Shown: one piece after another, positions 1-27,760 of the stretch
How the letters are laid out: each line of letters starts with the position of its first letter
Position numbering within the stretch: position 1 is the stretch's first letter
IMG/VR virus record: IMGVR_UViG_3300017917_002374
Location: 186,001 to 250,000 of that record
DNA: 64,000 nt
Reading direction: 5' to 3' (one strand)
Made by a program: the position numbers and the translations under genes
Notes under the pieces: generated by a model
Told to the model about the DNA's origin: nothing
What the model saw: the letters and a program-made list of their open reading frames with translations, nothing else
Databases searched by the model: none

Positions 1-1
1 T

Positions 2-109
2 GATACTAAATTATATCAGGTATGTGATAATCCAATAGACGACAGTTGTTGGCAACGTATAATTTATCAAGGTAATAAAGAACTATTGACACAATGGTCT
101 CAAAAATAA
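2..109 (+). CDS. 3' end of an upstream gene running in from outside the window (…DTKLYQVCDNPIDDSCWQRIIYQGNKELLTQWSQK*)
   Basis: Frame starting at base 2 is open to TAA at 107-109 and overlaps the desaturase ATG (94) by 16 nt. Product cannot be identified from this fragment. Confidence 0.5.
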   Translation, partial: DTKLYQVCDNPIDDSCWQRIIYQGNKELLTQWSQK

Positions 110-882
110 TAAAACAAATATTCCACTGGACCCCTACCTGGGGTGCCTGGCTACCTGTGCAGTTTTTTGGTATATTGGCTATCTATAATATTTTGACTGG
201 TTCTACTTCGCCTTATTGGTGGATCTATACAATTATAGGATACTTTTTGTTTTCGGTTATAGGTATATCAATAGGATACCATAGATATCTAAGTCATAAA
301 AGTTTTAAAACAAGAAAAATTTACCAAAGAATCATGCTCTGGTGCGGCGTAATGGCTGCACAAGGCACTCCTATTTTTTGGGCTATCATACATCGAGGGT
401 ATCATCATAAGCACACCGATACAGATCTAGATCCTCATAGTCCAAGACATGGATTTTGGCATTCGTACCTTGGATGGTTATTTAAAATTAGACCTGTTAT
501 GAATACCAAATATGTATTAGATCTAATGAAAAATCAGGACGTATTTTTTGCCCATAAAAATTATTTTACTATATTGTGGATATCAAATATTTTGTTATTG
601 ACTATTAACGTAGATCTTTGGTTATATGGTGTGATGTTGCCTTGTTTTTTATCTTTCCATGCTTATGCTACCAACACTAGTATAAATCATTGCAAGGCAT
701 TAGGTTATCAGCGATATAAATTAAACAACGATAGTACTAATGTAATAGTACTTTGGCCTTTATTATTTGGTGATGCGTGGCACAATAATCACCATAATAG
801 AGCCGCTGATCCAAATTTTGGAAAAAGCACTTGGGAATTAGATCCTGCTTTTTGGATTATTAAGTTGATTCGTTCTGATTAA
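94..882 (+). CDS. Membrane-bound fatty acid desaturase (delta-9/DesC-like family)
   Basis: Three His boxes HRYLSH, HRGYHH and HNNHH; DPHSP motif; hydrophobic segments. Confidence 0.93.
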   Translation: MVSKIIKQIFHWTPTWGAWLPVQFFGILAIYNILTGSTSPYWWIYTIIGYFLFSVIGISIGYHRYLSHKSFKTRKIYQRIMLWCGVMAAQGTPIFWAIIHRGYHHKHTDTDLDPHSPRHGFWHSYLGWLFKIRPVMNTKYVLDLMKNQDVFFAHKNYFTILWISNILLLTINVDLWLYGVMLPCFLSFHAYATNTSINHCKALGYQRYKLNNDSTNVIVLWPLLFGDAWHNNHHNRAADPNFGKSTWELDPAFWIIKLIRSD

Positions 883-1120
883 GAATTTTTTCAAGTGCGT
901 CATGAAGACTTTGCAAAGTTTTTATTTCTGCGATTTCAGGGTACTCGTCAAGATTTATATCTATACCAAACTCTTCGTCACAGGCAATCAATAGCTCAGT
1001 TAGACTAAGACTATCAAGTCCTAAATCTTTTTTAAACTGTAAATTAAGATTGATATCAGTAACTTTCTTTTTATTAAAATGCTCACGTACAATTTTTAAC
1101 AAACGTTCTTCAATATTCAT
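860..1120 (-). CDS. Acyl carrier protein
   Basis: 86 aa, acidic, with DLGLDSLSLTELL phosphopantetheine-Ser motif and EEFGIDI; GGAG RBS and TAAATA motif upstream. Confidence 0.92.
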   Translation of the reverse strand: MNIEERLLKIVREHFNKKKVTDINLNLQFKKDLGLDSLSLTELLIACDEEFGIDINLDEYPEIAEIKTLQSLHDALEKILNQNEST

Positions 1121-1139
1121 AGAATGTGCGCTCCGTATA

Positions 1140-1145
1140 TATTTA
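1140..1145 (-). promoter_or_regulatory. Late promoter motif TAAATA (ACP gene)
   Basis: tattta on + strand, 20 nt upstream of the ACP ATG, followed by GGAG. Confidence 0.55.
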
Positions 1146-1163
1146 CACAGTACAGGCCATGTT

Positions 1164-1171
1164 TATAAATA
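1164..1171 (+). promoter_or_regulatory. T4-type late promoter TATAAATA (desaturase 2 / acpS)
   Basis: Exact T4 late consensus 5 nt before the in-frame ATG at 1177. Confidence 0.65.
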
Positions 1172-1176
1172 TTTTT

Positions 1177-1959
1177 ATGACCTTTGCTAATCAATATAGA
1201 CTTTTTTATTTTATCATACTTTTGTCTGTCCCATTAAGTGTATTTGTAGCTATTCAAACATCTATTTGGTATTTGATAGGCAGTTATCTGTGGATGCGTA
1301 TCACAAGTTTTTTATTTGTTCAAATAGGTATGCACAGATACTTTGCTCACAATGGGTTTACTACCGATAAAAAGCGTCATATTTTTTTAACTTTAGGCAG
1401 TATTCTCACTGGTAATGGCAGTCCATTAACTTGGAGTACTCACCATTTACATCATCATAGACATAGCGATACCAATCTTGATTTACATAGTCCTGTAAAC
1501 GGTATCATTAATACTACATTTTTATGGCCTATAAGAGATGTTAGTTATTTTGAAAACGGAAAACAAATAGGAATTACGCCAAAAAGACTTGTTAAAGATA
1601 AATTACTAATGTTTATTCATCAACACTATTTCAAAATATGGATCTTCATTATTCTACTAAGTGGGTTTATTGACTGGAAAATTACTTTGTTCTTATTTTT
1701 AGCTCCTGCAGGATGGAGTGTACTACACGGAAACATAATTACCAACTTTATAAGTCACTGGAAGCTGCCAGGGTCTTATAGAAATTTTGATACTAACGAT
1801 AACAGTTACAATAACAAATGGATTCAGCTACTACAATTTGGCGAAGGTTTACACAATAATCATCACCATAACATGCGTGATTATAATCAAGCTGTACGAA
1901 AAGACGAATTTGATTTGGCCGCTTGGACTATTGATAAATTTTTTAAGGTCACTAAATGA
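1177..1959 (+). CDS. Second membrane-bound fatty acid desaturase (delta-9/DesC-like)
   Basis: His boxes HRYFAH, HLHHH and HNNHH; DLHSP; FDTNDNSYNN. Start placed at ATG 1177 (after the late promoter) rather than the track's GTG 1126. Confidence 0.92.
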   Translation: MTFANQYRLFYFIILLSVPLSVFVAIQTSIWYLIGSYLWMRITSFLFVQIGMHRYFAHNGFTTDKKRHIFLTLGSILTGNGSPLTWSTHHLHHHRHSDTNLDLHSPVNGIINTTFLWPIRDVSYFENGKQIGITPKRLVKDKLLMFIHQHYFKIWIFIILLSGFIDWKITLFLFLAPAGWSVLHGNIITNFISHWKLPGSYRNFDTNDNSYNNKWIQLLQFGEGLHNNHHHNMRDYNQAVRKDEFDLAAWTIDKFFKVTK

Positions 1960-2315
1960 TTATTGGCACAGGAATTGATTTGGTAACTATTTCAAGATTT
2001 AGAGAAATGCCTCGCAAAGAAAAATTAGCAGAAAAAATTCTTACAGAAATAGAATATAATGAATATACCAATTCTGACGATCAAGGATTATATCTAGCTA
2101 GAGCTTGGGCGGTTAAGGAAGCAGTGGCAAAAAGTTTTGGAACTGGTATCGCAGATGATGTGGTGTGGAAGAATATGCAACTGAGTAAAAATAAAAATGG
2201 TCAACCATTATTGCAATTAAAGAAGCCATTGATTCGTGAAGGCATACAATGTCATATCAGTATCAGTCACGATGGCGATAGTCTAATCGCCACCGCTGTT
2301 TTATCTACTTACTGA
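1956..2315 (+). CDS. acpS: Holo-ACP synthase (4'-phosphopantetheinyl transferase, AcpS type)
   Basis: IIGTGIDLV, ARAWAVKEAVAKSFGTGI and ISISHD motifs; 119 aa; ATGA overlap with desaturase 2. Confidence 0.95.
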   Translation: MIIGTGIDLVTISRFREMPRKEKLAEKILTEIEYNEYTNSDDQGLYLARAWAVKEAVAKSFGTGIADDVVWKNMQLSKNKNGQPLLQLKKPLIREGIQCHISISHDGDSLIATAVLSTY

Positions 2316-4235
2316 CACCACCGACATAACCAATTCTTCGTTGTCAGTATCTTTATTAACTAGGAGTCTGCCAATTACGTTAAATGCGTTGCACTCATCT
2401 ATGTGAGCTACTCTTGCACACCCGTTACCAGCAGATACTAGACGATCGCCTTTTGTTCCTTTACCAATAACTCTAACAGGAACTCTTCCTGTCATAGCAA
2501 TAGCAGGATGTGTATTGTCTTCGCCTGCGGCTTGATTCATAAGATAAGCGTAATTTTTACTCACTACACCTAGCACTTGTGTACTTGACTGTTCAAGTTC
2601 TTGTGTTACTTCTTGATCGCCACCAATACGAACCACAGTGCCTTCTACATATTCTGCATCAGCAGCAAATCGTTCTGCCAAGTCAGCATATGTGGCTTGC
2701 CATTTAGATCCAGCAGTTAGAGTCCAGGTTCCTTCAACTGATCCAGATGTTCCAACTGCTCCTGTGGTTAGTAGAGGAGTCTTCACGCTGGTATTCATGT
2801 CCACAGTGCGACCAAAAAAATCTCTAAATCTGAAACTTGAAGAACCCCAGTCATATGACAAAGTAGTGTCAGGTAACAAAGTGCCTTGCATGCTTCTAGT
2901 ACCATCACGTAACACAGCTGACGTTCCAAGACTGCTTAGACCATTTTGTAATGCTCTCACGTTTGAATACATACTAGCAGTTGCTGCCGGTGCGATACCA
3001 GTAGCACTGAGCACATTGCTATGTATTGCTGCAACGTTTGACCAAAGAGCCACAATGTTTGCTGCAATAGTTTGACTCGCTCCGCCGGAACCAGATGGTC
3101 CAGTGATTTGTGTCCATGGTGTAGTATTAGCAAATCCTGATAAAGGTCCTCCAACTATACCTAGTTCACTTTGAATCACACGAACATTACTGTAGACCAA
3201 GGCTGTATTTGCACTAAGTGTGTTGATAGTTGTGTTTAAGGTATTAACGTTGGCTGCAATAAATCCTTTGATCGCAGTATCGTTGGTATCAACATATCCT
3301 TTGGTTGCAATACCCAACACTGCTGTAGGATCTGCACTGACACTGACCAAGCCAGTGGTACGGTCAATGGTAATTGCATTGATGCTCAATCCACCTGCAT
3401 TGTCTGGCTTGGTTTTAATGATCAAACCATTACCACGTAACAAACTGGCTAAGTTTACGTTGTTTCCTGCTACGTTAATTTCAAAATAATCAACTGTACC
3501 AGCAGTTTCCTGTATGATCAAACCGTCTGGGTTTTGAATTTCCAACTGAGCTTCAATAACCGGGGTGGTTTTGGTCAAGTAACTGCTGGCAATAATACCA
3601 CCTAGATAGGCTGCATTGTTTGCATTCTCATTAAAGGTTAGTGCAGGAATTCTATCTGTTGCCAAATTAAAGCCAGGCTTAACTGTGGCAAACCCAGGCA
3701 GTGTGGAGTTTGGAGTAAACACTGCATCTTTGCTTAAAATTCCTAGCAGTTGGTTTTGCACAAAAAACTTAACCACCACGTGACTGATCAAACTGGTGTC
3801 TACAATGGTGTCAGCAATAGCGCCTGATGTGCCTGTAGTAGCTGTAAAGCTGGGTCCAATGATAATCCAGCTGGCGCCAGAATATACTTTTAACTGTTGA
3901 TTAACTGTATCAAACCAAAGGTCTCCTGCAATAGCATTTGATGGTGCATCACTGGAGCTCTGAGCACCGCTGATGGTTTTCCAGGTGCCAAACCTGTCAT
4001 ACACTTGCAGCAGTCTGGTGTCACTTTTCCACCAAAGCTGACCCACAAGAGGATTGCTTGGAGCACTTGAATTGGCAAAATTTTCAAGTAATCTTATGAA
4101 ATTTTCGTTTAGGAACGTGCCGTACCCAGCGTAGTTTTTACCAATCAGCGTCAAACTACTGGCCGTGCTATTGGTTTGCCCGTCTGCCACTGTGGCTAAG
4201 GGTGTTCCATCCGTTTTGATAATATTATAACTCAT
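2301..4235 (-). CDS. Baseplate-attached tail fibre/spike protein with C-terminal chaperone-like (Peptidase_G2/IMC-like) domain
   Basis: N-terminus paralogous to the neighbouring 911-aa fibre; GDLWFDT repeats; ATKGYVD coiled segment; C-terminal ADLAERF…TGRVPVRVIG domain. Confidence 0.7.
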   Translation of the reverse strand: MSYNIIKTDGTPLATVADGQTNSTASSLTLIGKNYAGYGTFLNENFIRLLENFANSSAPSNPLVGQLWWKSDTRLLQVYDRFGTWKTISGAQSSSDAPSNAIAGDLWFDTVNQQLKVYSGASWIIIGPSFTATTGTSGAIADTIVDTSLISHVVVKFFVQNQLLGILSKDAVFTPNSTLPGFATVKPGFNLATDRIPALTFNENANNAAYLGGIIASSYLTKTTPVIEAQLEIQNPDGLIIQETAGTVDYFEINVAGNNVNLASLLRGNGLIIKTKPDNAGGLSINAITIDRTTGLVSVSADPTAVLGIATKGYVDTNDTAIKGFIAANVNTLNTTINTLSANTALVYSNVRVIQSELGIVGGPLSGFANTTPWTQITGPSGSGGASQTIAANIVALWSNVAAIHSNVLSATGIAPAATASMYSNVRALQNGLSSLGTSAVLRDGTRSMQGTLLPDTTLSYDWGSSSFRFRDFFGRTVDMNTSVKTPLLTTGAVGTSGSVEGTWTLTAGSKWQATYADLAERFAADAEYVEGTVVRIGGDQEVTQELEQSSTQVLGVVSKNYAYLMNQAAGEDNTHPAIAMTGRVPVRVIGKGTKGDRLVSAGNGCARVAHIDECNAFNVIGRLLVNKDTDNEELVMSVVSVSR

Positions 4236-4258
4236 TCCTAAAACTCCAATTTATCTAG

Positions 4259-4265
4259 TATTTAT
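4259..4265 (-). promoter_or_regulatory. Late promoter ATAAATA
   Basis: tatttat on + strand upstream of the 644-aa gene. Confidence 0.6.
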
Positions 4266-4269
4266 TGTA

Positions 4270-7005
4270 TCAAATAACCTTCATTATGTAGCAAAGTGCA
4301 TAATAAGGAGGCACAGTGCTTACTACCACGCTATGGTTGTGTGCTCCGTCTGAGCCAATAGTGTGTGTATGTCCCTGACTACCACCAGTATTTGCCACGG
4401 TTAATGTTGTGGTCCCAGTACTTTGCGATGACTTATGCACTGCGAATCCAGAACCGGTGTTGGTTAACACTGTAGCACTACCTGAATGGGTATGACTTGG
4501 CATCTGATCAATTGTCAGTGCTGTGCTTCCGGTCGCACCTGAGTGAGTGTGAGAACCATTGCTTGCAGTGGTTGCAGTGTTGGCAGTTGCACCACCAGTA
4601 GCACCTGGATTGTAAGTGCTGCCTGCACCAACAATGAATCTATTTCTTAAATCAGGTGTACTGTTGGTTCCATCACAAATTTGCCATCCAAAAGGAACAG
4701 TAGCAGCAGATCCACTCCACATGATAATCATACCTGCTGGTAATAATCTATGTACAAAGGCTGTGGTTGCTAGCTGTGTGGTATTGGCAGAAATATTAGC
4801 AGTTGGTGCAGCAGGAACATTAGTAAACGTTGGACTGCTTAACTGAGCATAAGTGGCTAGATTAATATTAGCGATTGTGCCATTAACCCATGCTGTACTT
4901 GCGATTTGTCCTGAGTTTGTTCCAGGCGCTGCATTAGGAACCACTGGTGTCCCAGTGAACGTTGGACTTGCAATACTAGCTCTTAATGCAATTTGTGTAT
5001 TAGCCGCAGACAGATTTGCCACCAAACTAGCATTCAAAGAATTGTTTTCCCCAACAACAAACGCAGTGGTAGCAATTTGTGTAGTGCTAGTTCCAGCAGA
5101 CGCAGTTGGCGCAGTTGGGGTACCAGTTAGTGCAGGACTTGATAGATCTGCTTTTAACAGTAACGATGAACTTACATCTGCAGATAGAGTGTTAATTGCG
5201 CCGGTTACAAACGCAGTGGTAGCAATTTGTGTAGTGCTAGTTCCAGCAGACGCAGTTGGCGCAGTTGGTATGCCTGTAAATGCAGGATCGTTAGTGTTTG
5301 ACTTTAATGCTAATGCGAGCTGTTGACTTGCTGCATTAGCTTGCCATGCGTTGTTTGTGGATGCAATTAAATTTTGAACAAATGCTGTAGTGGCAATTTG
5401 TGTGGTATCAGTTGAACTATCAGGTGTTGGAGCAGTTGGAGCGCCTGTGAATGCTGGATTATTAATAGTTGCACGTAACCCAACTGTTGTGGTCAGTGTT
5501 GCTAGATTACTGTAAACATCGTCAATAATATTGCTAACATTTCCAAAGTCTTGACGAGACACAGGTGCAGAGTTGATTAGTGCTGCAACATTACTTGCGA
5601 TAAATCCAACTAGTGTATCTTTTGTAGAATCTACATATTGTTTTGTGGATACTCCAAGATTAGCAGTAGGATCTGCACGAACTGTTAGCAATCCGTCACT
5701 GCCATCAATATTTAAAACTGTAGTAGTTGATCCCACCAAAGGAACATTACTAACAAAACTGATGTTTGCTCCACTCACAATGTTTCTAATTGTCAGATTG
5801 CCAAGATTTTGCAATAGTTGTATGTTGCCGCCAACTGCAAGATTACCTTCAACATCAACATTATTCAAGAATCGTGAATAACTGTCTAATTGAGCATACA
5901 AATCAGCAGATTTGTTAGCCAGTTTCTGTGCATTTGTAGCAGTTCCGTTGTACAGAGCGACGGTGGTACTGCCTCTTTGGAAAGTTACATCCTCGTTGAC
6001 ATACACTGTGGTAGTTGTATTAACTGTTACTGCATTGTTAGGATACAGAGCAGAGACTATTGCACCTGCACCAATTGACACATTTGCAGATGTGTATCTG
6101 TCTCCTACTAGCAAGTCTTGATTTGAGACCAACTGAATCAAAGTTTCTCCAGCAGACCCAACTGAGTAAGTTTGTACTGTCTTGACTATTTGTGTTGACG
6201 ACGATGATCTTAGTTGCAGACCGGGTTTGATTGTTGAAAACCCAGGTATTGCTGACCCAATTGCAGGAGTGTATTCTAAATCATTGCTTGCAGTACCAAC
6301 AATTGATCCATCTACATATATTAAACCAACTGTATGACTTGTGGCATTGGTGTCTGTGATTGTGCTAGGTATGATTCCGTTGACTTTTTGCCCGCGAGTA
6401 TATGCAGGTCCGACTGTGTACCAGCCGCTGCCTCGAGTAAAATTTATAGCATCATTTAATGTTAAGTTTGCATTTGCACTCAAACGAATTTGTGTTGGAT
6501 TTAAAACTTGACTGATTCTTACATCATTGAGAAGACTAATATTAGCATGCGTAACTACATCGTCAGTTAATAAACTAGTGGTGCTAGTAATTGTGGCAAT
6601 ATTTCCAGTGCTGTTAGCTGTTACATTTCTTTGAAATACAGTTTCCCCAGTCCAAATTTTTAGTTGGTAGGTGTTGTTGTCAAACCAAAAATCACCAATT
6701 TTTCTGCCTGCGGATCCAGGTTCTGATTCGCTACTGGTAATTGAGCTAATTACTTTCCAGGCACTACCTTCCCATAGGCTTAAATTTTTTGTTGTAGTAC
6801 TAAACCAAAGTTGTCCATCAAGTGGTGTGATTGGAGCATTGGTACTGGCAAAGTTTTCCATGAGAGCAACAAAGTTGTCATTTAGAAAAACACCATAACC
6901 TGAATAGTTTCTACCGACCAGCGTAACTCCGTAGTCAGTGTTCTTTTCAGTATCTGGAACTGTTACAAGAGCATCGCCATTGGTTTTTGTTATAATATAA
7001 GCCAT
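4270..7005 (-). CDS. Tail fibre protein with collar domain and His-x-His tip
   Basis: Repeats P(T/A)FTGxPTAPT…TTQIATTAFV; collar domain PAGMIIMWSG…GWQICDG…PDLRNRFIVGAG…PPYYALCYIMK; HTH/HNH metal-binding motifs. Confidence 0.85.
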   Translation of the reverse strand: MAYIITKTNGDALVTVPDTEKNTDYGVTLVGRNYSGYGVFLNDNFVALMENFASTNAPITPLDGQLWFSTTTKNLSLWEGSAWKVISSITSSESEPGSAGRKIGDFWFDNNTYQLKIWTGETVFQRNVTANSTGNIATITSTTSLLTDDVVTHANISLLNDVRISQVLNPTQIRLSANANLTLNDAINFTRGSGWYTVGPAYTRGQKVNGIIPSTITDTNATSHTVGLIYVDGSIVGTASNDLEYTPAIGSAIPGFSTIKPGLQLRSSSSTQIVKTVQTYSVGSAGETLIQLVSNQDLLVGDRYTSANVSIGAGAIVSALYPNNAVTVNTTTTVYVNEDVTFQRGSTTVALYNGTATNAQKLANKSADLYAQLDSYSRFLNNVDVEGNLAVGGNIQLLQNLGNLTIRNIVSGANISFVSNVPLVGSTTTVLNIDGSDGLLTVRADPTANLGVSTKQYVDSTKDTLVGFIASNVAALINSAPVSRQDFGNVSNIIDDVYSNLATLTTTVGLRATINNPAFTGAPTAPTPDSSTDTTQIATTAFVQNLIASTNNAWQANAASQQLALALKSNTNDPAFTGIPTAPTASAGTSTTQIATTAFVTGAINTLSADVSSSLLLKADLSSPALTGTPTAPTASAGTSTTQIATTAFVVGENNSLNASLVANLSAANTQIALRASIASPTFTGTPVVPNAAPGTNSGQIASTAWVNGTIANINLATYAQLSSPTFTNVPAAPTANISANTTQLATTAFVHRLLPAGMIIMWSGSAATVPFGWQICDGTNSTPDLRNRFIVGAGSTYNPGATGGATANTATTASNGSHTHSGATGSTALTIDQMPSHTHSGSATVLTNTGSGFAVHKSSQSTGTTTLTVANTGGSQGHTHTIGSDGAHNHSVVVSTVPPYYALCYIMKVI
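5057..5268. repeat. 62-bp perfect direct repeat (5057-5118 and 5207-5268) inside the fibre gene
   Basis: acaaacgcagtggtagcaatttgtgtagtgctagttccagcagacgcagttggcgcagttgg occurs twice, 150 bp apart. Confidence 0.9.
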
Positions 7006-7011
7006 TTTTTA

Positions 7012-7626
7012 TTATCCTATTGCACTCAAATTGGTCAGCGTCTGAATACGCACAGTGTAATCAATTTGAATCAGCCTGTTTAAACTTTTTTGTACAGGGT
7101 GAAAAATCACGTGTGTTAATAACTTCCCTGTACCTGAAGTTTCGTCAAGACTTCTAGCCTTAATTCCTAGTTCATCAAAAGTGAACGTGTCATTTAATGT
7201 AGTACTGTTGTCAAACACACTTTGGGTAGCAGGCTCGCCGTAATCTAGCAAGCAGCTGATAATTATGTCGCTGTATGGATTACCTGGAACATGACGCACC
7301 TGCATCTTGTTATTGGTTGGATCTGCGTTATCGTTGTCAGTATCGTCAATGATCTTGTAATAGGTTGGGTTGTACAGAGTTGCGTTCACACTAGTGGTAT
7401 TTGGAATTAGATATGTGATAACTCCGGTGCTGTCTACCGCACTACCTCCGTTACCAAAATGCATTTCGTACATGTATTGTGCATCTCTGTGACTGAGAGC
7501 AAATGCAATAGCTTCACTCATGTTTTCATAGTGAATAGCGTTTTTCTTGTCCACAAAAACTTCGCCGCTGTGCGGATCAAAAATCTTTACAAAACCTTCA
7601 ATTTTGATTAAACCTTGTGTTATCAT
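7012..7626 (-). CDS. Conserved virion structural protein (baseplate/tail region)
   Basis: 204-aa ORF between fibre and wedge genes, with FDELG…LLTHVIFHPVQKSLNRLIQIDYTVRI C-terminus; exact role not recognised. Confidence 0.6.
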   Translation of the reverse strand: MITQGLIKIEGFVKIFDPHSGEVFVDKKNAIHYENMSEAIAFALSHRDAQYMYEMHFGNGGSAVDSTGVITYLIPNTTSVNATLYNPTYYKIIDDTDNDNADPTNNKMQVRHVPGNPYSDIIISCLLDYGEPATQSVFDNSTTLNDTFTFDELGIKARSLDETSGTGKLLTHVIFHPVQKSLNRLIQIDYTVRIQTLTNLSAIG

Positions 7627-7769
7627 GTTCTAACCTCAACAAAAACTTGCTTGGTTTCAGGGTCGTATATTTTTACAACTCCAGAAATATCAAACCCACC
7701 TAGTTCATTTGGTTTTTGTGAGTGCTGAACCGGTTCCTGTGGCTGCGTATTTTCGGGTAATTTATTCAT
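7623..7769 (-). CDS. Small 48-aa protein missing from the ORF track (MNKLPENTQ…VVKIYDPETKQVFVEVRT)
   Basis: TAAATA (7775-7780) and AAGGA RBS upstream; ATGA overlap with the next gene; C-terminal half resembles the N-terminus of that gene. Confidence 0.75.
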   Translation of the reverse strand: MNKLPENTQPQEPVQHSQKPNELGGFDISGVVKIYDPETKQVFVEVRT

Positions 7770-7774
7770 ATCCT

Positions 7775-7780
7775 TATTTA
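7775..7780 (-). promoter_or_regulatory. Late promoter TAAATA
   Basis: tattta directly upstream of the RBS of the 48-aa ORF. Confidence 0.55.
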
Positions 7781-7809
7781 GCATAATAATGAATCCTGTA
7801 ATTAAGTGT

Positions 7810-8892
7810 TCAGCGCAAGCCCAAAATGCTCACTAGATTTCCAGCAAACACATTGCCAGAAATAGTACTGTTTGTGGTTCCGCCCACATTTCTAGTTAAA
7901 TTGGTTAATCTGCTGTTAGCAGTCCAAACTCGTTCGTACCAGATTACCTCGCTGGCGATTCTAACGGCCCCCACAGTAGGCCTATTACTAAAATACAAGT
8001 ACTCACCTGCAGATACTGTGACATTTGCGTCAATATTTTGCACAATCACAGTGTTGTTAGTTGGAAAGATTTTACGCACTGTGGTTAAAGTATCATCAGA
8101 TACTAAAGCAACGATATTAGATGTAGCTACTAAACTTCCTATCTTTATATTGTCTAGAGTTTCAAGTGTAAGCACAAGACTGTTTGCTAATAGTGCGTTT
8201 GCAGTGATAGTGCGCAGGTTTCTAATGGTAAAGTTTTTTGGATAAAAGTAACAGGTCTCGTTCGCTGAAACAGTAATGTTAGTGTTAGCAATTAAATTCT
8301 GTATTAGCACACTGGCGTTGGAGAATATTTTTTGCACTATACTGTTTGCTGTACTAGGAATGTTAGCGGTAACAATTTTGTCGCCTACTGTGATATTAAC
8401 TGTGCTTGACAGAGGAATCCATAGGTTACTGTTTATTTGAGCACCGTTGGCAAAATACGTATTGGCACTCACAACACTGTTTGCTGTTATACTGCTTGGC
8501 GTAGGAAACAAAGCAATGTTGCTTACAGCTATTTCTGCATTGCTCCATGTCACTAAGTTACTAGTCAAAAAATCGTACTTGGGCAATCTAGGATCAATAT
8601 TGGTTCTATACGACGGGAGCACTTTGAGAAACGCTGTTTCAAATGTGTTAGTGGCATATAATCCAACATTAGATACTAGTTTTTGAAAGGTAATTGTGTC
8701 CCCAATACCCGTTGATAAATTGGTAGACACTTGTACCACGTTTGAACTAGCAAATATTCTTTCAACTCTGACATTGTCACTTCTTGGCACACTGTTGGTA
8801 ATAACACAATCAGCTACTGCTACCCCTGATACAGAGTCTACATAAACATTAGCGTTAGAAGATGCTACAACTATATTTGCAACTACACTCAT
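7810..8892 (-). CDS. Virion-associated protein made of three copies of a ~55-60 aa beta module
   Basis: 360 aa, Asn/Thr/Val-rich, internal repeats; starts 1 nt after the stop of the giant gene. Confidence 0.6.
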   Translation of the reverse strand: MSVVANIVVASSNANVYVDSVSGVAVADCVITNSVPRSDNVRVERIFASSNVVQVSTNLSTGIGDTITFQKLVSNVGLYATNTFETAFLKVLPSYRTNIDPRLPKYDFLTSNLVTWSNAEIAVSNIALFPTPSSITANSVVSANTYFANGAQINSNLWIPLSSTVNITVGDKIVTANIPSTANSIVQKIFSNASVLIQNLIANTNITVSANETCYFYPKNFTIRNLRTITANALLANSLVLTLETLDNIKIGSLVATSNIVALVSDDTLTTVRKIFPTNNTVIVQNIDANVTVSAGEYLYFSNRPTVGAVRIASEVIWYERVWTANSRLTNLTRNVGGTTNSTISGNVFAGNLVSILGLR

Positions 8893-8893
8893 A

Positions 8894-11800
8894 TTATGTT
8901 CCTGGTTCTAACCAAATACTTGATTGCGGTACTTGATTGCTTATGCTGGTTTGGTATGTTACAGAATTAGCGTCTCCACTAAAACCATTGTTCACAGTAA
9001 GATCAGAAAGTATAGTCAACACTGTGTCTCGTGTGATTTCTTGTGCCTGACTTGCATCACTAATTAGACTTCCTACTTCATGTACCAACGGAATACTGGT
9101 TCTTGAGGCACCTCTACGTATGTCTGTGATAGCATTTCTTCCTACATCTCTTCCAAAATAATTAATGCGTTCTGCATTGATCCAGATGGATCCAGGTTCA
9201 TTTAGAACTGCATTTGGTTCTGGCAGTTTTGTTACGTCTTCAACTATGATTTCTGTATCGTCGTATGCCAAACTAGAAGCCAACACGGTGGTATTTGCCT
9301 GACTCAATCTATAATAAACAGTTGGATTTTTATAATCTGTGAATATCTTATAAGCTATTACATTGCCATAATCCACATTACCGTTGATCACATTTGCAGT
9401 GAACACGTTCATTTGCAAACTGTCAATTACCTGTCCAGGCACAAGTTCTTCAGGTGCATGGCTACTGTATGTATCAATAAATTGACCACCATTGATAACA
9501 ATGTCTTCAGGTCTAGTACCAAGATTGGTATCAGTATATTCACTGCTAATAGTGGTATCAAGACTCAGTATATCCGAAGCAGTTTCAGTAAATGGTTGTC
9601 CAAATACTTTTACACCACTGTAGCTGGTTCCGGGTATTAGATCAGGAATATCCTTGGCCAAATGATTCAGCACACCGCCAATGGTGTAAAGTTTTGCACC
9701 AATCACGCTGGTGCCACCTTGAATTCCTAATGTGGTATTTGCTTCTAGAGTAAAGCCTGACGTGATTGCAACTGCATTAGCAAATACCAAGGTTCTAGAA
9801 TTTTTAGGCAAAGCCTGCGTGGTCACATACTGAGATTTTAATCCAGTAGTGTCAAACAGAGTAATCAAAGATCCTACAGGTATGTTTGCAGTGAACGGCT
9901 GACTGATTCGCACTGTGGTTGTGTTAACACTGATACTGTTGTAGTCAATGTTAAGATTACGTCCACTGCCTTCAGCATACTGCCAAGTAAATGCAGGGAA
10001 TCTACCAATCTGTTTGATTCTAGCACCTGTTGGTATACCAGTACCAGAAATGGTCCAGTTGGCTGCAACTTTGTCAAATCCTGACACATACACTGTGTTT
10101 TCGCCTCTTGACGCAGCTCTGCTGGTCACCAAAGTTTTGATTTCGTTGTTTGGCCCTGTAAAGGTCAATGTGGTTCCTACTGGAATGTTTGCAGTAAACA
10201 CATAAGCAAAGCTGATGCTTTGCCCTGTTCTTGAACTAAAGGATGTTGATGCAAATGCAACATTCACTGTCCATTCGTCTGTGTTAGAATCATAGTTAGC
10301 TGTGGTTACCACACTGTCCGCTGGCAGGTGTGTGGAAGTCACTGTCATGCCTGGAATTATCCAACCTATTAGTGCTGATCCATTAATAACAATTTCAGCT
10401 GTGGTTGCAGATACTACTGCATCCCATCTAGCCAGGGTTTCTGATGATGCACCAGCTCTTGATTCAGCAGATAGAATTGGATTGATGTTACCTAGATCAA
10501 TGTAGGCTTCGCTTTGTGATCCAGGATATCCCCAGATTGTGGTACTACCAGTTCCTGTCACAACAAATTTTTCATTATCCCATGCAATATCTGTGAGGTC
10601 AATTTTCTCTAAAGCACTTGGAGTCAGTGGACTAACAAAATTATCTGCGTTAAAATATCTAAAGTTCTTGTACACATAAATTCCGTGATCCACTACAGTT
10701 TTTCCAATAGTGTCGCTTGCAAGATCGGCAGTTCCAGTTTGCACCTCAAGCGGACTATCAATTCTGTTCCAAATCAGTGTACCAGCAGAACCAACTGCCA
10801 CAATGTATCTATCAAATGTGGTACTAACTGCTATACCATTGATTTGTTCTCCAGATACTCCGTCACCCTGGCCTCTTATTTCAGCTGGCACTGCCATGGA
10901 GATCCATGGATAAGATTGGTTGGTAAGTTTACCAGAATCGTAATTATAAGATTTGGCATATCCTTGAATCAAATCGTCCAATCGGTTGTAACTGGTGATA
11001 AACATGTTGCCGTTTACTCCGCCCACAATTACAAATCCCTGCTTCATTAAAGATTGGGTACCTGATGTAAAGTATCCAGAAGACTGCAAGTCTACAGTAT
11101 ACTGAGTACCATTGTTGTCGGTTAATGTGCCAAAATCAATCGCATGTACGGCTAAAAGTTGTCTTGGAAAGACAAAAATGTTTGGTTGAGGTTTAGCACT
11201 GTACCAGCCTTGTGCAACATCTTCTGACGTGTTGTACGGATTTACTAACACACTGTTTCCATTGCCCACAGCTACTACATACTTTGATCTTGTGGTAGCA
11301 GCAGATGCTACTCCAACAAAGTCTACTACCTGATTTGCATTTTGTTGCACAGCTCCTTCAGGATTGTTGGCATCAGGACTAAATTTAAATTCAGTAACTT
11401 GTTCTTTTGTCCAAGTCAGAGCATTTGTTGAAGTTAACAAACTGCCTTGATTGCCTACCACTACCCATACGTTGCCGTCAAAAAAGCATCCATCTCTAAG
11501 ATCAATATCGCTTTCTCTTACAGGTATGTAGGTCCAGGTTTCACCTGTTTGGCTTACTGCTAGCAGAGCTCTATTCCCGATTGCTAGATATTGATATTCG
11601 TGCAGATAAGAAACGCCGCCGGAGTGTAAAACCTTGTTCCACTCATTGTTCTGGCTAACGGCTGCTTCATTTGTATTACTTGCATCCAATCGTTGGCTAT
11701 CAGGACTGCTGTACAAAGTTGCAATATCAGGACTTCCTGGTTGATTGTATACTGCAATTCTGTCAATGGCATTATCAATATCAATTCCTGAAAGTTTCTG

Positions 11801-14800
11801 CACCACTGACGCATCATTAAACAGATTTAAGTCAAGCGTACCCGAGCCCAACACTGTTTTTAATACTTTGTATGCGTAGTTGTATCTTGGCAATGCTTGA
11901 TCTGGCAGGTTGTTAAAGAATACCGAAGTCACATCAGACACCACCACTATGTCATCTGTATGATAGGTGGTATACGGTTTCCATTTGGTTACTTTTGAAG
12001 CGTATGTTACTCTATCAAAACTTATCAAGGTTTTGATATTTCTAACAGTTTTGTTTACTGTACTAGACGAAACATCGCCGCCAATACTTGACAATACCAC
12101 ATAACCTTTAGCACCAAAACCGCCACCACCTTCAATGATTATACTAGGTTGACTTGTATAACCAGTACCTCTGCTGATTAGATCAATTTCAATCACGCTA
12201 CCGGTGCTGTTGTCAATAGTAGCGACCGCGGTGGCTCCTGTGCCACCACCGCCAATTATAAACACACTAGGAGCTCTTATGTATCCTTCACCTCCATTGA
12301 TCACAATCACAGACTCTAACACATATTTGTAATTAACTGACCAGCTAACAGCAAAACTATTGGCAATTAAATTTGCGTCTGTTGTGTTGTTAATATCAAG
12401 CACACGATAATTTCTTTGATCTATATCATAAATGCTTGACAAATCAAAATCAGTAGTATTGGCATTTGTGATATCAGTACCTTCGTAATCCAATAGATAA
12501 TTGCGCAGTTGAGTTCTGTATGGCTTGACTTCGTTAATGTAGTTTTCAAAATAATCTTGCTCGTCTCGGATGTATGACGAAAAAGTTTCTAGTTTACGTA
12601 TCTTGTGTACCACCGAAACCAAACTGGTCTTGATCAACCAATCTAGAGATCTTTGTTCGCTCAAGATATAGTTAACCAAAGTAAAGAACAGCTTGTTTAT
12701 CTGAATGGTATCAGTATCTGTAAAAATACCAGAAATTAACCCTTGCACAATGTTTCTTAGTTCTAGTGCAATGGTTTTGGCGAACCCAACGTTATCAAAA
12801 GGAGCGTTATCAAACCCAACAAGACTTAAATCATAATCGTACAATGCAGTACTGATTTGTATAGTGCCATTTTCTACTCCAACAATAGTTAACGACAAAT
12901 CTGCATTGGCCAAATACAATTCAAATTGTCCGTTGCCGTCATCAAGCACCTTAATTATATTGCCTGGTACCAAGTTCAACGTGACTATATCTTTAAATTC
13001 TTGAACAATATAATCAATTGTAGTTGTTTCATTATATCCACCGGCATACCAGTCGGCATAGAACCAATAACGACTGCTGTCATAACTTTGAATTCTTATC
13101 AAAGTCCAAACAGAATAATCAGAATCTGGAGTGTATTCGTATATGGTCCAATATGCTTCGTAATCAGCATCGGATCTTACCAGTACTTTATAACCTGCTT
13201 GCAGTTCTTCAGTTTGAACATACAGCAGTTCGTCCTTGGTATCAACTATAAGATTATAAAAACCAGCAGCATCTGGGGGTATCGGTTCTGCATTTTTTAA
13301 AATACTTAGATCTTTGTATTTTACAATCAGTTGTTCTTTGAGGAAACGATTTACGTAATCTACAAATACCTCAGTGGCCTTTATGGTATCTTTGATCATG
13401 CTCTGACGCGGACGAAGTGCAATACCATAACGTGTGCTCTCGCGTAGAGATAGATCAGGTATTACTTCACCAACAATATTTTCTCCTGCAAGACTATCAA
13501 TTAATTTATTAATATATTTCTCAGGAACCGGACTGAGCGCATTTCCTTGCTGAACTAACTCGTACTCGCTGTGCGCAATATTTTCATTTACAGTAATACC
13601 ATAGTCTATTTTGAAAATTATTTCGTCTGCTAGAAGATATCTATTGACGTTGTATAAACTAAATGCATTAGAACCAACCACTGCAAAGTAAGGCAAATTT
13701 TGACTTTTTGGATCTGCGATGATTTTTGCTAACGATGCTACACTGTTTGACCGTTTGGTTCTTACAATATCTACGGTGATTTTATTTTTTACCCAATAGT
13801 AATATTTGGTACGTATTAATCCTGACTGATTATCTAAAAAGTTAAATTCTACGTAGGCAGTATCGTCAGCATACAATGCTTCTCCGTCGCCAATTAAAGT
13901 TTGATATTCGCTAGGCAGTACAAAACTTTCAACCCATTCGCACACTTCAATTTCGCTTCCAGGGAACAATTCTCCCCAGAAAGTTGTTCTATATGATAGG
14001 TCGCCTTGTTCATAATCAATGTATCTACACTTGTCCAGATTCCACCAGGTTTTACCCACATGTAGATCATTCCAAACACTGTTTTCATCAAACGTTTGTG
14101 TGGTTCCGTTGCCCCTGTTGTAAACTGCCGGATCGTAGATAGTTTTATAATCTAGATCTTGGTCAGCTATTCCTAATATCTTGCCCTTAGCAGGATCAAA
14201 ATAATCAAGATCAGTGACAATGGTTTGAGTTTTACGATTGTACAAGAATCCTTGATTAATGTAATCAATATCAACTTTGTCTGTTCTTGATCTTAATTTG
14301 CTCCATCCTTTTTGTTCGTTAGGATTAATAAAAAGATGTAACAACCCTGCATTATCATTATAATAATCGCTCTTGGTGGCGCCCACGATGATCCAGTTGT
14401 TTCTTATTTCAATACCAGATCCAAAATTGTCATCAAAGAAAATTCTACTGTTCTGCAATACCTGATTGTATAGATATTGACTTGGTGCCTCTATGGTTTC
14501 GTTTGGAATAGGTAGATAATCGTAGATATAAACAGCACCAGAATTTTTCAAAAGATCAATAAATCTTGTGGTATCTTTATCAAACACAGTTGCTTGATTA
14601 TCAAAAGTGCTTTTCTTGAGAGTAACACCGCCCTCACTGGATACCACTAGGGTTTCACCTGTTACATTGTCCAGTTTGATAAGAGTTCCAAATCTTTCCG
14701 GAGCACCAAGCTCTGGGTGCCTAAATTCCTGTACTGGTGTATAGATAGAAAAACCTATGTCTTCTAGTGCTGTACCTGCGCCGGGTAATATGTTTATACT

Positions 14801-26800: not shown

Positions 26801-27760
26801 TCCTTGGTCGTACTTGTCAAAATCAAAAGTGCCTTTGTCTGTCCAATCAGTATCGTTTTCTGATCTTGAAAGGAATATTAAGGTTGATCCATCTAATGAT
26901 CTAGCAGTAGCACCATCAATGCCGCCTGACTGTCTAATTATTGTAAGCAGATGATTTTGAACTCTAGAGTATGATAAATCCGTAGCATAATTTACTGTGG
27001 CTATTCTTGATGCGAATCGTTCGGCATCCTGTGCATTTGATGCTGGAACGGAAAATACAACTACACCGTTGTCTTCACCATTGTTTTCAACTCCAAAAAC
27101 TTCTCTTGACAAAGCTTCGGCTTCGGTTGATCTAGTACCAGTTTTTCCTGGCTCGGTTTGAATCCAAAAACCATTGCCTGGTTGGTTTACTGTGAATCTA
27201 TAGGTATTGCCTTTGACCAGAGTTAAAACTGGATTAGGATCTCTGCCATCACTAGAAAGTGTATAAGCTGTTTGTTTTGAATCACGAGCTACGGAAAAAT
27301 TTAATACTTCCGTAATGGCACTGGCACTTACTGCCACTTCTGGTGGTCCGTCAGGCAACCAATAATATTGATTAAAGTTAACAAACTTATCAAAGTCAAA
27401 CAGACCATTGAAATTGTAACTTTCGTTTTCAAAAAGTCTGCTGTGGTCATTGGTTAGACCACCGTAGTAATTAATTTTTTGAATTAAATCAATGTAGCTG
27501 GAATAGAATTCTACATTTTTGTTTTGATCCTGTACTACGAAACTGGCCTCAAGTTGATAATTCTGTCTGTCTTGTGTGGGTTCTTCTATGTACGAATCAT
27601 TATACTTAAAAGTTGGAGCAAATTTACGTCCTACAAATCCGTCAATTTTTTTTAAGTCAGGTTCTGAAATCAACTGATCAACAGTTGCAGCCAAAAACTT
27701 TTTGTTGGTGTCGGATCTAAATATTTCTGGTAGTAAATTAATACTTTTAATTGAGGCCAT
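8894..27760 (-). CDS. Giant (6,288 aa) baseplate wedge-associated protein, positionally gp7-like
   Basis: Uninterrupted 18.9-kb ORF directly after gp25 and gp6; GGGGTGATATA / GSGYTxxPTV modules; seven FG-type propeller blades; late promoter upstream. The gp7 assignment is by synteny only. Confidence 0.7.

Follow-up and report, generated by a model that had tools for sequence, protein, structure and literature searches.

A predicted acyl-carrier and membrane desaturase gene island in a giant freshwater phage

RESULTS

Genes at the desaturase, ACP and AcpS locus

The analyzed window is a 64,000-nucleotide stretch of the IMG/VR virus record IMGVR_UViG_3300017917_002374 (positions 186,001 to 250,000), and positions 94–2315 of this window encode two SCD-family membrane desaturases (Des1 and Des2), an AcpP-like acyl carrier protein (ACP) and a full-length AcpS, ending against a tail-fibre-like gene. 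A sequence-only reading had described this stretch as two His-box desaturases flanking an ACP, followed by a complete AcpS that abuts the tail-fibre operon of a T4-like phage, and we confirmed that this observation is real. All four genes lie at the expected coordinates and pass curated profile thresholds, but their arrangement required several corrections, which are given below with the individual genes.

The window opens with the 3′ end of a gene that starts upstream (positions 2–109, plus strand; ORF 9471–10016 in locus L001). This gene, u181, encodes 181 amino acid residues and is a fifth gene of the module. It had no Pfam hit, but its AF2 model (pLDDT 94.9) is predicted to have a GNAT fold, because the 50 Foldseek PDB hits listed were all GNAT enzymes (TM 0.45–0.56), with the top hits being N-acyltransferases at TM of about 0.5 and E of about 1e-5. 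This match is generic. The stop of u181 overlaps the start of Des1 by 16 nt.

Des1 (94–882, plus strand, 262 aa) matched PF00487 at 44.2 bits against a cut-off of 29.7. It aligned to the solved SCD1 structures 4zyo (E 1.8e-19) and 4ymk (E 4.3e-18) over residues 24–252, across all His boxes and the metal ligands. The ACP (860–1120, 86 aa) matched PF00550 at 35.5 bits against 20.8 and contains the DSL serine motif (DSLS). It matched AcpP-type ACPs in the PDB (E 4e-9 to 7e-8) and is of the FAS type, but it did not reach the NCBIfam equivalog cut-off (46.7 against 70.45) and is thus a diverged ACP. It is encoded on the minus strand, where it converges on Des1 with a 23-nt overlap and diverges from Des2.

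The longest ORF of Des2 runs from GTG 1126 to 1959 on the plus strand and matched PF00487 at 52.7 bits. However, alignment with five homologues indicates that Des2 probably starts at ATG 1177, which gives a protein of 260 aa. The 56-bp divergent intergenic region between the ACP and Des2 starts (1121–1176) is presumed to hold promoters for both genes. The T4 late promoter motif TATAAATA, which occurs here at 1164–1171, was not enriched in the window or the island, and sigma-70-like hits were no more frequent than in shuffled sequences.

The stop of Des2 overlaps the start of AcpS (ATGA). AcpS (1956–2315, plus strand, 119 aa) is of the AcpS-type (group I) 4′-phosphopantetheinyl transferases (PPTases), matching PF01648 (58.5 bits against 25), TIGR00516 (78.8 against 59.8) and TIGR00556, all above cut-off. 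It aligned over its full length to Vibrio cholerae AcpS 3qmn (E 5e-15) and to 1f7l, with the N-terminal GxD and the KEAxxK motifs conserved. The module ends at a 644-aa tail-fibre-like gene on the minus strand (2301–4235), which gave PHROG virion and tail-fibre-related hits and converges on AcpS with a 15-nt overlap.

The locus is the downstream end of an island in a jumbo myovirus

The phage (contig Ga0192394_131365) is a 354,959-bp freshwater jumbo myovirus with T4-like core genes and not a cyanophage. Its major capsid protein is 66–70% identical to those of Sinorhizobium phage Phosso, Vibrio phage 2.275.O and PA5oct. Near-identical DNA occurs in 20 freshwater, pond, lake or soil runs from 12 studies. 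In contrast, a megablast search of window positions 1–8000 against 50,697 phage records returned no match. Among cultured phages, only Pelagibacter phage Mosig and Acinetobacter phage MD-2021a have a distant desaturase, none has the AsnS-like u304 described below, and no AcpS-type PPTase was found in any credible cultured-phage genome.

The four genes are the last 2.3 kb of an AT-rich island of ~22 kb (contig about 165.9–188.3 kb), which runs upstream of the window. The island also contains two more desaturases, a FA_hydroxylase, two radical-SAM enzymes, an SDR, AspH-like dioxygenases and PP-loop amide synthetases; a B12 radical-SAM enzyme is among these genes. The gene u304 is AsnS/beta-lactam-synthetase-like, with an invariant SGGxDS motif. 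Pairwise BLAST of u179, u172 and u627 against the Asp_Arg_Hydrox proteins of phage Mosig was not significant, and the AspH-like assignment was obtained only by profile–profile comparison. The four desaturases of the island (Des1–4) are 28–31% identical to each other. The three His boxes (HxxxxH, HxxHH or HxxxHH, HxxHH) and the extra TM4 His are conserved in all of them (invariant H63, H68, H100, H104, H105, H199, H230, H233 and H234), and each has two long hydrophobic regions, consistent with the two hydrophobic hairpins of the SCD family.

Next, we investigated whether the junction between AcpS and the tail-fibre-like gene could be an assembly chimera, one of the outcomes that had been set in advance as refuting the sequence-only reading. 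It is not a chimera. The same junction is present in an independent Logan contig (L002), whose last 160 bases are identical to window positions 2294–2453, and it is conserved in five diverged relatives (loci L049, the L052 type, L170, L172 and L208). More distant relatives carry the module with no detectable homologue of these tail fibres nearby.

Conservation of the module across relatives

Across 91 distinct relatives, the conserved core is u181 followed by a Des1-type desaturase, as a desaturase gene lies directly downstream of u181 in 65 of 68 loci. ACP and AcpS were both present in 11 of 45 loci, both absent in 31 and split in 3, so that they are optional and present in about a quarter of loci. 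The ACP has the same opposite-strand position after Des1 in 9 unique loci. AcpS is most often the first gene of an AcpS-GNAT-Des1 operon (17 of 27 unique AcpS genes), whereas the adjacency of Des2 and then AcpS recurs in L049, L170, L172, L149 and L154.

The ACP, AcpS and desaturases thus recur together in diverged phages in several permuted gene orders, which indicates that they are linked by more than chance. Note that the loci were fetched with module genes as queries, so the sample is biased. In addition, the Fisher test on ACP and AcpS gave p = 9e-8, but their co-occurrence rests on about 5 changes on the tree, with only 3 independent contrasts, and is not significant after correction for relatedness. 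The association of ACP and AcpS is therefore consistent, but not proven. Because most GNAT-Des1 loci lack both genes, the core is inferred to work without a private carrier, and the ACP may be only a booster or may serve another enzyme.

Viral desaturases are separate from cellular enzymes

To place the viral desaturases, we compared them with cellular enzymes in trees, none of which contained authentic JamB, TtuB or CayB/C/E sequences. The viral desaturases formed virus-only clades, and the cellular sequences formed one clade apart from all viral ones, at 98 (starred) in a tree with 40 cellular rows and at 93 (unstarred) in a tree with 15. Des1 sits in a starred clade of 49 rows, 45 of them next to u181. 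The closest cellular relatives are only 28–37% identical. As a proxy for thiotemplated enzymes, we used the two desaturases of a FAAL-desaturase-desaturase-ACP-PKS locus on a Burkholderia gladioli plasmid, thiotemplated by annotation. These grouped with ordinary cellular delta-9 enzymes and not with Des1 or Des2. Grouping with delta-9 enzymes, which the sequence-only reading would have taken as evidence against its proposal, therefore does not discriminate between the readings.

Search for acyl-loading enzymes and redox partners

No acyl-loading enzyme, thioesterase or electron donor was found in about 43 kb around the module. PF00501 was absent from the precomputed Pfam hits for this region, and no hydrolase or thioesterase Pfam hit was found in the island. 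PROSITE-type motif scans for AMP-binding, rubredoxin and 4Fe-ferredoxin signatures across the window and all viral loci also returned nothing.

DISCUSSION

Proposed function of the module

The sequence-only reading proposed that the four genes form a self-activating cassette with which the phage runs a private acyl-carrier pathway, by analogy with JamABC/TtuABC and polyyne clusters. This interpretation is only partly supported. The linkage of ACP, AcpS and desaturases agrees with it, and the many deeply diverged paralogues and co-located tailoring enzymes argue against simple fluidity tuning. However, the unit is not a self-contained four-gene cassette but part of a larger island, and "self-activating" covers only phosphopantetheinylation.

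Our preferred, but still tentative, explanation is that the genes belong to a virus-only module whose core is a GNAT-fold acyltransferase gene translationally coupled to a Des1-type SCD-family membrane desaturase. This core is often preceded by an asparagine-synthetase-like carboxylate-adenylating enzyme, in about a quarter of phages it is joined by an AcpP-like ACP plus AcpS, and sometimes by a second desaturase fused in register to AcpS. In this view, AcpS would convert the phage apo-ACP to holo-ACP, as inferred from family membership, and the ACP would receive a fatty acyl chain, with host FAS or acyl-ACP synthetase, or a phage PP-loop enzyme, as candidate loaders. Des1 and Des2, together with the neighboring desaturases, the FA_hydroxylase, the class-B radical-SAM enzyme, the methyltransferase and the AspH-like dioxygenases, would tailor the chain at the membrane. 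Finally, the GNAT would pass the acyl group to an amine acceptor, yielding an N-acyl lipid, a lipoamino acid, or a lipidated peptide or protein. Our analysis establishes the gene identities, family membership, conserved linkage and virus-specific clades, whereas every chemical step, including activity of AcpS on this ACP, desaturase regiospecificity, substrate and product, is inferred from sequence alone.

A broader reading, which is possible but doubtful on present evidence, is that jumbo and other aquatic phages carry a virus-specific, thiotemplated lipid pathway. In it, an ACP primed by a phage AcpS would present an acyl chain to a complex of a GNAT and an SCD-family membrane desaturase and, with arrays of paralogous desaturases, hydroxylases and B12 radical-SAM enzymes, would build a previously unknown N-acyl lipid or lipopeptide during infection. 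That would amount to a viral natural-product gene cluster widespread in fresh and marine waters.

Phage lipid genes have been read as single fluidity-tuning auxiliary genes, and literature searches found no description of this module. The module suggests that large aquatic phages run multi-step acyl chemistry of their own, with a private carrier protein and its activating enzyme. It also supplies large, virus-only radiations of compact (about 250-aa) SCD-family desaturases and a GNAT-desaturase gene pair. These could have new regiochemistry or carrier dependence, which is of interest for enzymology and for understanding how phages remodel host envelopes or their own virions. The module is abundant in public freshwater metagenomes.

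Comparison with known systems

The cyanophage vFAD-I/II proteins, which are DesC-like delta-9 lipid desaturases (Roitman et al. 2017, PMC5776448), are likewise phage-encoded membrane desaturases of the SCD/DesC superfamily with three His boxes. They are single genes that are nested next to picocyanobacterial DesC clades, act on host lipids, and have no ACP, PPTase or GNAT. In contrast, the four paralogues described here lie in virus-only clades, are at most 37% identical to any cellular enzyme and are coupled to GNAT, ACP and AcpS, and the host is not a cyanobacterium as far as can be told.

The JamABC and TtuABC terminal-alkyne cassettes (PMC8341276) share with the present locus a dedicated ACP next to a membrane-bound SCD-like desaturase, and by analogy the chain would be modified while on the carrier. 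However, no JamA/TtuA ligase was found in about 43 kb around the module, there is no downstream PKS/NRPS, and a PPTase and a GNAT are present instead. The bacterial polyyne clusters cay and pgn (PMC9828172) also combine several membrane desaturases with a designated ACP, but of their minimal set (FAAL, ACP, three desaturases and thioesterase, plus rubredoxin) only the ACP and at least three desaturases were found.

Acyl-ACP-dependent GNAT-type N-acyltransferases, such as N-acyl amino acid synthases, OlsB of ornithine lipids and AHL synthases, resemble u181 in being small GNAT-fold proteins genetically tied to an ACP. Ornithine-lipid and lipid A pathways also use AspH-family (LpxO/OlsC) and FA_hydroxylase-family (OlsE) tailoring enzymes like those in the island. 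u181 has no detectable sequence similarity to these families, with Foldseek returning only generic acetyltransferases, and coupling of a GNAT to a membrane desaturase is not known to have been described.

The position of the island, next to tail fibres and a giant structural gene, resembles the hypervariable "host recognition cluster" of pelagimyophages and cyanomyophages (PMC7029224) and the ACP-containing "host-interface island" of freshwater Flavobacterium jumbophages (PMC13573597). Radical-SAM cassettes, glycosyltransferases and ACPs have been reported in such islands, but neither paper describes desaturase arrays, an AcpS or the GNAT-desaturase pair.

Alternative explanations

The strongest alternative, although unlikely, is that these are ordinary membrane-fluidity auxiliary genes, with delta-9 acyl-lipid or acyl-CoA desaturases acting on host phospholipids as cyanophage vFADs do, and with ACP and AcpS as unrelated genes that boost host fatty-acid synthesis during infection. 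The desaturases are SCD/DesC-family by sequence, JGI names homologues stearoyl-CoA desaturase, cyanophage vFADs are proven delta-9 lipid desaturases (PMC5776448), the ACP is FAS-type, and most related loci have no phage ACP. However, there are four to eight deeply diverged paralogues per island, their clades are virus-only and outside the cellular delta-9 clade, and the genes are tightly and repeatedly coupled to a GNAT, AcpS, ACP, hydroxylases and radical-SAM enzymes, whereas one desaturase would be enough for fluidity.

Less likely is post-translational lipidation and tailoring of a virion protein (tail fibre) or of a ribosomal peptide. Here, the GNAT would acylate a Lys or N-terminus from acyl-ACP, the AspH-like dioxygenases, radical-SAM enzymes, methyltransferase and AsnS-like enzymes would modify the polypeptide, and the desaturases would modify the attached chain. 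The conserved junction with the tail-fibre genes agrees with this, as does phage Mosig, whose FA_desaturase lies among Asp_Arg_Hydrox, GNAT and radical-SAM genes next to tail fibres. AspH-like, class-B radical-SAM and AsnS-like enzymes are typical peptide-tailoring families. However, adjacency to tail fibres is weak evidence for virion acylation, because this position is the usual hypervariable region of aquatic T4-like myophages and holds many unrelated genes (PMC7029224). Moreover, no precursor peptide was identified, and membrane desaturases are not known to act on a protein-bound chain.

A JamABC/TtuABC- or polyyne-type pathway, in which the ACP-bound chain is desaturated to a terminal alkyne or polyyne and released as a small molecule, is very unlikely. 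ACP plus multiple membrane desaturases is the hallmark shared with jam, ttu, cay and pgn clusters (PMC8341276, PMC9828172), and a dedicated PPTase is consistent with a private carrier. However, the analogy fails on ligase, thioesterase and rubredoxin, which were found neither in the Pfam lists nor by the motif scans, and the alkyne pathway is thus unsupported.

An assembly chimera or bacterial contamination, which might be suspected because the cassette has 33% G+C against 41% for the rest of the window, is effectively refuted by the presence of the same junction in independent assemblies and samples, by synteny conserved in relatives whose AcpS is 49–67% identical, and by the location of all homologues above 40% identity on viral or metagenomic contigs, several of about 350 kb.

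Gene content of the cassette

Window 94-2315 contains four open reading frames. These encode a desaturase of 262 aa (Des1, 94..882, plus strand), an 86-aa PP-binding protein with a DSLS motif (ACP, 860..1120, minus strand), a second desaturase (Des2, 1126..1959, plus strand) and a 119-aa AcpS (1956..2315, plus strand). All four products passed the Pfam gathering thresholds, with two matches to PF00487 and one each to PF00550 and PF01648. AcpS also passed the NCBIfam model for holo-ACP synthase (TIGR00516, 78.8 bits against a cut-off of 59.8). The sequence-only reading, which described two desaturases flanking an ACP and followed by a complete AcpS next to the tail-fibre genes, was therefore correct in its observation, but four corrections are needed. 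First, the ACP is encoded on the opposite strand, where it converges on Des1 with 23 overlapping bases and diverges from Des2. Second, alignment with five homologues placed the start of Des2 at ATG 1177. Third, Des2 and AcpS overlap by ATGA. Fourth, the first 109 bases of the window are the end of a fifth gene, u181, whose stop overlaps the start of Des1 by 16 bases. On its other side, AcpS converges on a 644-aa tail-fibre-like gene with a 15-base overlap. The 56-bp divergent spacer between ACP and Des2 contains a perfect T4 late-promoter-like TATAAATA at window 1164-1171. This motif occurs only twice in 64 kb and is not enriched, so its presence here is probably a coincidence.

Genomic context

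The rest of the window encodes T4-like core functions, namely baseplate wedge and hub proteins, a gp55-like late sigma factor, a gp46/47-like nuclease, portal and major head protein. The major capsid protein is 66-70% identical to those of the jumbo phages Phosso, Vibrio 2.275.O, PA5oct and Serratia BF, whereas no cultured phage matched at the DNA level. The source is a 354,959-bp JGI contig, in which the window begins at about position 186,001. Near-identical DNA was found in 20 pond, freshwater, lake or soil runs from 12 studies. The AcpS/tail-fibre junction is present in an independent Logan contig that is identical over its last 160 bases, and it is conserved in five diverged relatives. 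A single 6288-aa ORF (window 8894-27760, minus strand) lies next to the tail-fibre genes. Its only Pfam hit is an E1_FCCH domain, and it is possibly the counterpart of the giant VrlC-type baseplate protein of aquatic T4-like phages.

Retrieval of the flanking sequences showed that the cassette is the end of an island of about 22 kb (contig position about 165.9-188.3 kb), which lies between DHFR/thymidylate synthase genes and the tail fibres. The part upstream of the window (contig about 165.9-186.0 kb) is covered by two flanking sequences, L003 (1-21449) and L250 (8951-20867). The G+C content of the island is 34-36% (33-36% when window 1-2315 is included) against 41-43% for the flanks, window 2316-64000 among them, which is consistent with a mobile accessory cassette exchanged among phages. 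Besides the four genes, the island encodes two more PF00487 desaturases (255 and 250 aa), a 150-aa FA_hydroxylase (PF04116), an SDR, a class-B (B12-type) radical-SAM enzyme, a twitch-domain radical-SAM enzyme that scored above cut-off, a QueC-like PP-loop protein, a GT2-like protein and a sugar-nucleotide epimerase/dehydratase. The best NCBIfam matches of the class-B enzyme, PhpK-like and 'lipid biosynthesis B12/rSAM', were below threshold.

Several proteins without Pfam hits could also be placed. The predicted structure of u181 (pLDDT 94.9) has a GNAT fold, and the top 50 Foldseek hits were all GNAT acyltransferases, at TM of about 0.5. The predicted structure of u304 (pLDDT 92.7) resembles the synthetase domains of asparagine synthetase, carbapenam synthetase and beta-lactam synthetase, and its SGGxDS PP-loop is invariant. 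The u184 protein looks like a class I methyltransferase, although this is an Atlas lead only. Four proteins (u179, u172, u157 and u221), and weakly the N-terminal part of u627, are homologous to each other and to the Asp_Arg_Hydrox proteins of Pelagibacter phage Mosig, with hhalign probabilities of 97-99.8%. Pfam confirmed PF05118 for the Mosig protein. The island holds four to five such AspH-like proteins and two PP-loop enzymes.

Viral desaturases

Des1 aligned with the human and mouse SCD1 structures at E values of 1.8e-19 and 4.3e-18, across all metal-binding boxes. The four paralogues of the island are only 28-31% identical to one another, yet all keep the His ligands, and each has two long hydrophobic hairpin regions. 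At 250-277 aa they are shorter than the cellular relatives that we retrieved. The protein database contained 150 homologues of Des1, of which the best 120 are 43-61% identical to it. All come from metagenomes, several on contigs of 110-357 kb. In a search of one genome per species of bacteria and archaea, the best relatives were 28-37% identical and are ordinary DesC-like genes of cyanobacteria, Planctomycetota and Acidobacteriota. Only 2 of 80 have an ACP-like ORF nearby.

In three trees, the cellular sequences formed one clade and the viral sequences formed at least five deep clades outside it. Support for this split was 98 (starred) with 40 cellular rows and 93 (unstarred) with 15. All trees were quick searches with some long branches, so their deep order is not reliable. 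As a stand-in for thiotemplated desaturases, we used a Burkholderia gladioli BSR3 plasmid locus (NC_015382.1, 72032-90766), which is annotated FAAL-desaturase-desaturase-ACP-methyltransferase-PKS-ACP-P450-hydrolase, is flanked by LuxR-type regulators and is by annotation of the jamABC/cay type. Its two desaturases grouped with the cellular clade (99, starred) and not with Des1 or Des2. The phage enzymes are therefore not close kin of this Jam/cay-type pair. The same result shows that grouping with ordinary delta-9 enzymes, which had been proposed beforehand as evidence against a carrier-dependent pathway, does not serve as a criterion. By annotation, carrier-dependent desaturases sit among 'ordinary' delta-9 enzymes, so phylogeny does not reveal the acyl carrier.

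Conservation of linkage

Next, we annotated 55 and then 113 further loci with the proteins of the island, and two recurrent virus-only modules appeared. The first is a five-gene operon of desaturase, desaturase, B12-type radical-SAM, 150-aa FA_hydroxylase and AsnS-like PP-loop enzyme. It occurs in many IMG/VR contigs (L042, 9845-14343; also L017, L015, L023 and L022) and has no ACP or AcpS. Desaturase genes can be numerous in viral contigs: eight PF00487-type ORFs lie within 15.5 kb of one contig (L013, IMGVR_UViG_3300013006_001903, 3683-15518), and two other loci, L036 and L007, have six and five.

The second module is the one described here. Among 91 distinct u181 sequences, a desaturase lies directly downstream on the same strand in 65 of 68 loci with enough sequence, and u304 lies directly upstream in 36 of 81. 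Among 45 loci with at least 4 kb on both sides, ACP and AcpS are both present in 11, both absent in 31 and split in 3. However, the loci were retrieved with module genes as queries, and on the u181 tree ACP and AcpS each need only about five changes. Just three independent contrasts exist, so the co-occurrence is not significant once relatedness is considered. The u181-adjacent desaturases form one starred clade, with 45 of 49 rows. Gene order is permuted between phages. The order u181-Des1-ACP(-)-Des2-AcpS is found here and in two related loci (L049 and L170), Des2-AcpS-u181-Des1-ACP(-) in L154, and Des-Des2-AcpS-ACP(+) in L149. The commonest order is AcpS-u181-Des1-ACP(-), with 17 of 27 unique AcpS genes directly before u181. 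Linkage that survives such rearrangement is good evidence that these genes work together. Six u181 loci (L157, L159, L176, L178, L188 and L240) carry two ACP genes. One converges on Des1, and the other lies downstream of an AsnS-like u304 gene on the opposite strand, which hints that the PP-loop enzyme works with an ACP.

Homologues of AcpS (44-98% identical) are numerous in metagenomes, including contigs of about 350 kb, whereas named cellular AcpS reach only 38% or less. Among 50,697 records of the cultured-phage collection, the only AcpS-like matches were unannotated fragments labelled Listeria, Staphylococcus or Enterococcus phage. These are 27-35% identical and are probably host DNA rather than phage genes.

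Functions not found and previous reports

No AMP-binding ligase, ketosynthase, acyltransferase, thioesterase, rubredoxin, ferredoxin or cytochrome b5 was found in about 43 kb around the module or in any related viral locus, as judged from precomputed Pfam lists and motif scans. The interpretation of the sequence-only reading, a self-activating module running a private acyl-carrier pathway, is supported only in part. The cassette would thus be 'self-activating' only in the sense of making holo-ACP. The minimal set of bacterial polyyne clusters is FAAL, ACP, three desaturases and thioesterase, plus rubredoxin (PMC9828172), and JamABC is defined by ligase, desaturase/acetylenase and ACP (PMC8341276). 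On these lists and scans, the cassette fulfils neither definition.

Full-text literature searches found no description of a phage desaturase-ACP-AcpS or GNAT-desaturase module. The nearest reports concern single cyanophage vFADs (PMC5776448), a stearoyl-CoA desaturase and fabF noted in freshwater pelagimyophages (PMC7029224), an acyl-CoA desaturase in Lake Baikal Nitrospirota viruses (PMC7678222) and an ACP-containing 'host-interface island' in freshwater Flavobacterium jumbophages (PMC13573597). All components of the module belong to known families. We therefore regard it as a previously undescribed form of putative carrier-linked fatty-acyl tailoring carried by phages, on the evidence of these searches.

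Proposed function

Whereas the gene assignments and their linkage come from the analyses described here, every step of the following mechanism, including enzymatic activity, substrate and product, is inferred. AcpS would prime the phage ACP. The AcpP-like ACP would then be acylated by host fatty-acid synthesis or a host acyl-ACP synthetase, or conceivably by one of the PP-loop carboxylate-adenylating proteins that travel with the module. In L157-type loci, u304 is co-oriented with a second ACP. Des1 and Des2 would introduce double bonds at the membrane, and the other island enzymes would add further desaturation, hydroxylation, C-methylation or reduction. The GNAT, whose gene is in this view translationally coupled to Des1, would transfer the acyl group to an amine, and the AsnS-like enzyme may form a further amide. 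The product would be an N-acyl lipid or lipoamino acid, or a lipidated peptide or protein. This general statement, ACP-dependent acyl tailoring with acyl transfer, is the most likely mechanism but remains tentative, and any single detail is less certain still. Two facts temper it. Most GNAT-Des1 loci have no phage ACP, so host AcpP or acyl-CoA must be enough there, and the GNAT assignment is generic.

Of the alternatives, plain membrane-fluidity genes survive best, although we consider this explanation unlikely. The family membership fits, whereas the paralogue arrays, the virus-only clades and the tight coupling to GNAT, AcpS and ACP do not. Lipidation of a virion protein or peptide, which is really a sub-case about the acceptor, is more doubtful. 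The tail-fibre adjacency is conserved in this lineage and is echoed in Pelagibacter phage Mosig (MT647606.1, 51702-68283), the only cultured T4-like phage with a related desaturase. There, the desaturase lies among Asp_Arg_Hydrox, MoaA-like radical-SAM, aminotransferase, GNAT and dioxygenase genes directly beside tail-fibre genes, that is, in the same kind of island in the same position. However, this position is the hypervariable 'host recognition cluster' of aquatic T4-like myophages, which collects unrelated enzymes (PMC7029224). Alkyne chemistry of the Jam/polyyne type is very unlikely, as its defining ligase and thioesterase were not found in the Pfam lists and motif scans. Finally, on the evidence of independent assemblies and diverged relatives, a chimeric origin of the AcpS/tail-fibre junction is effectively excluded.
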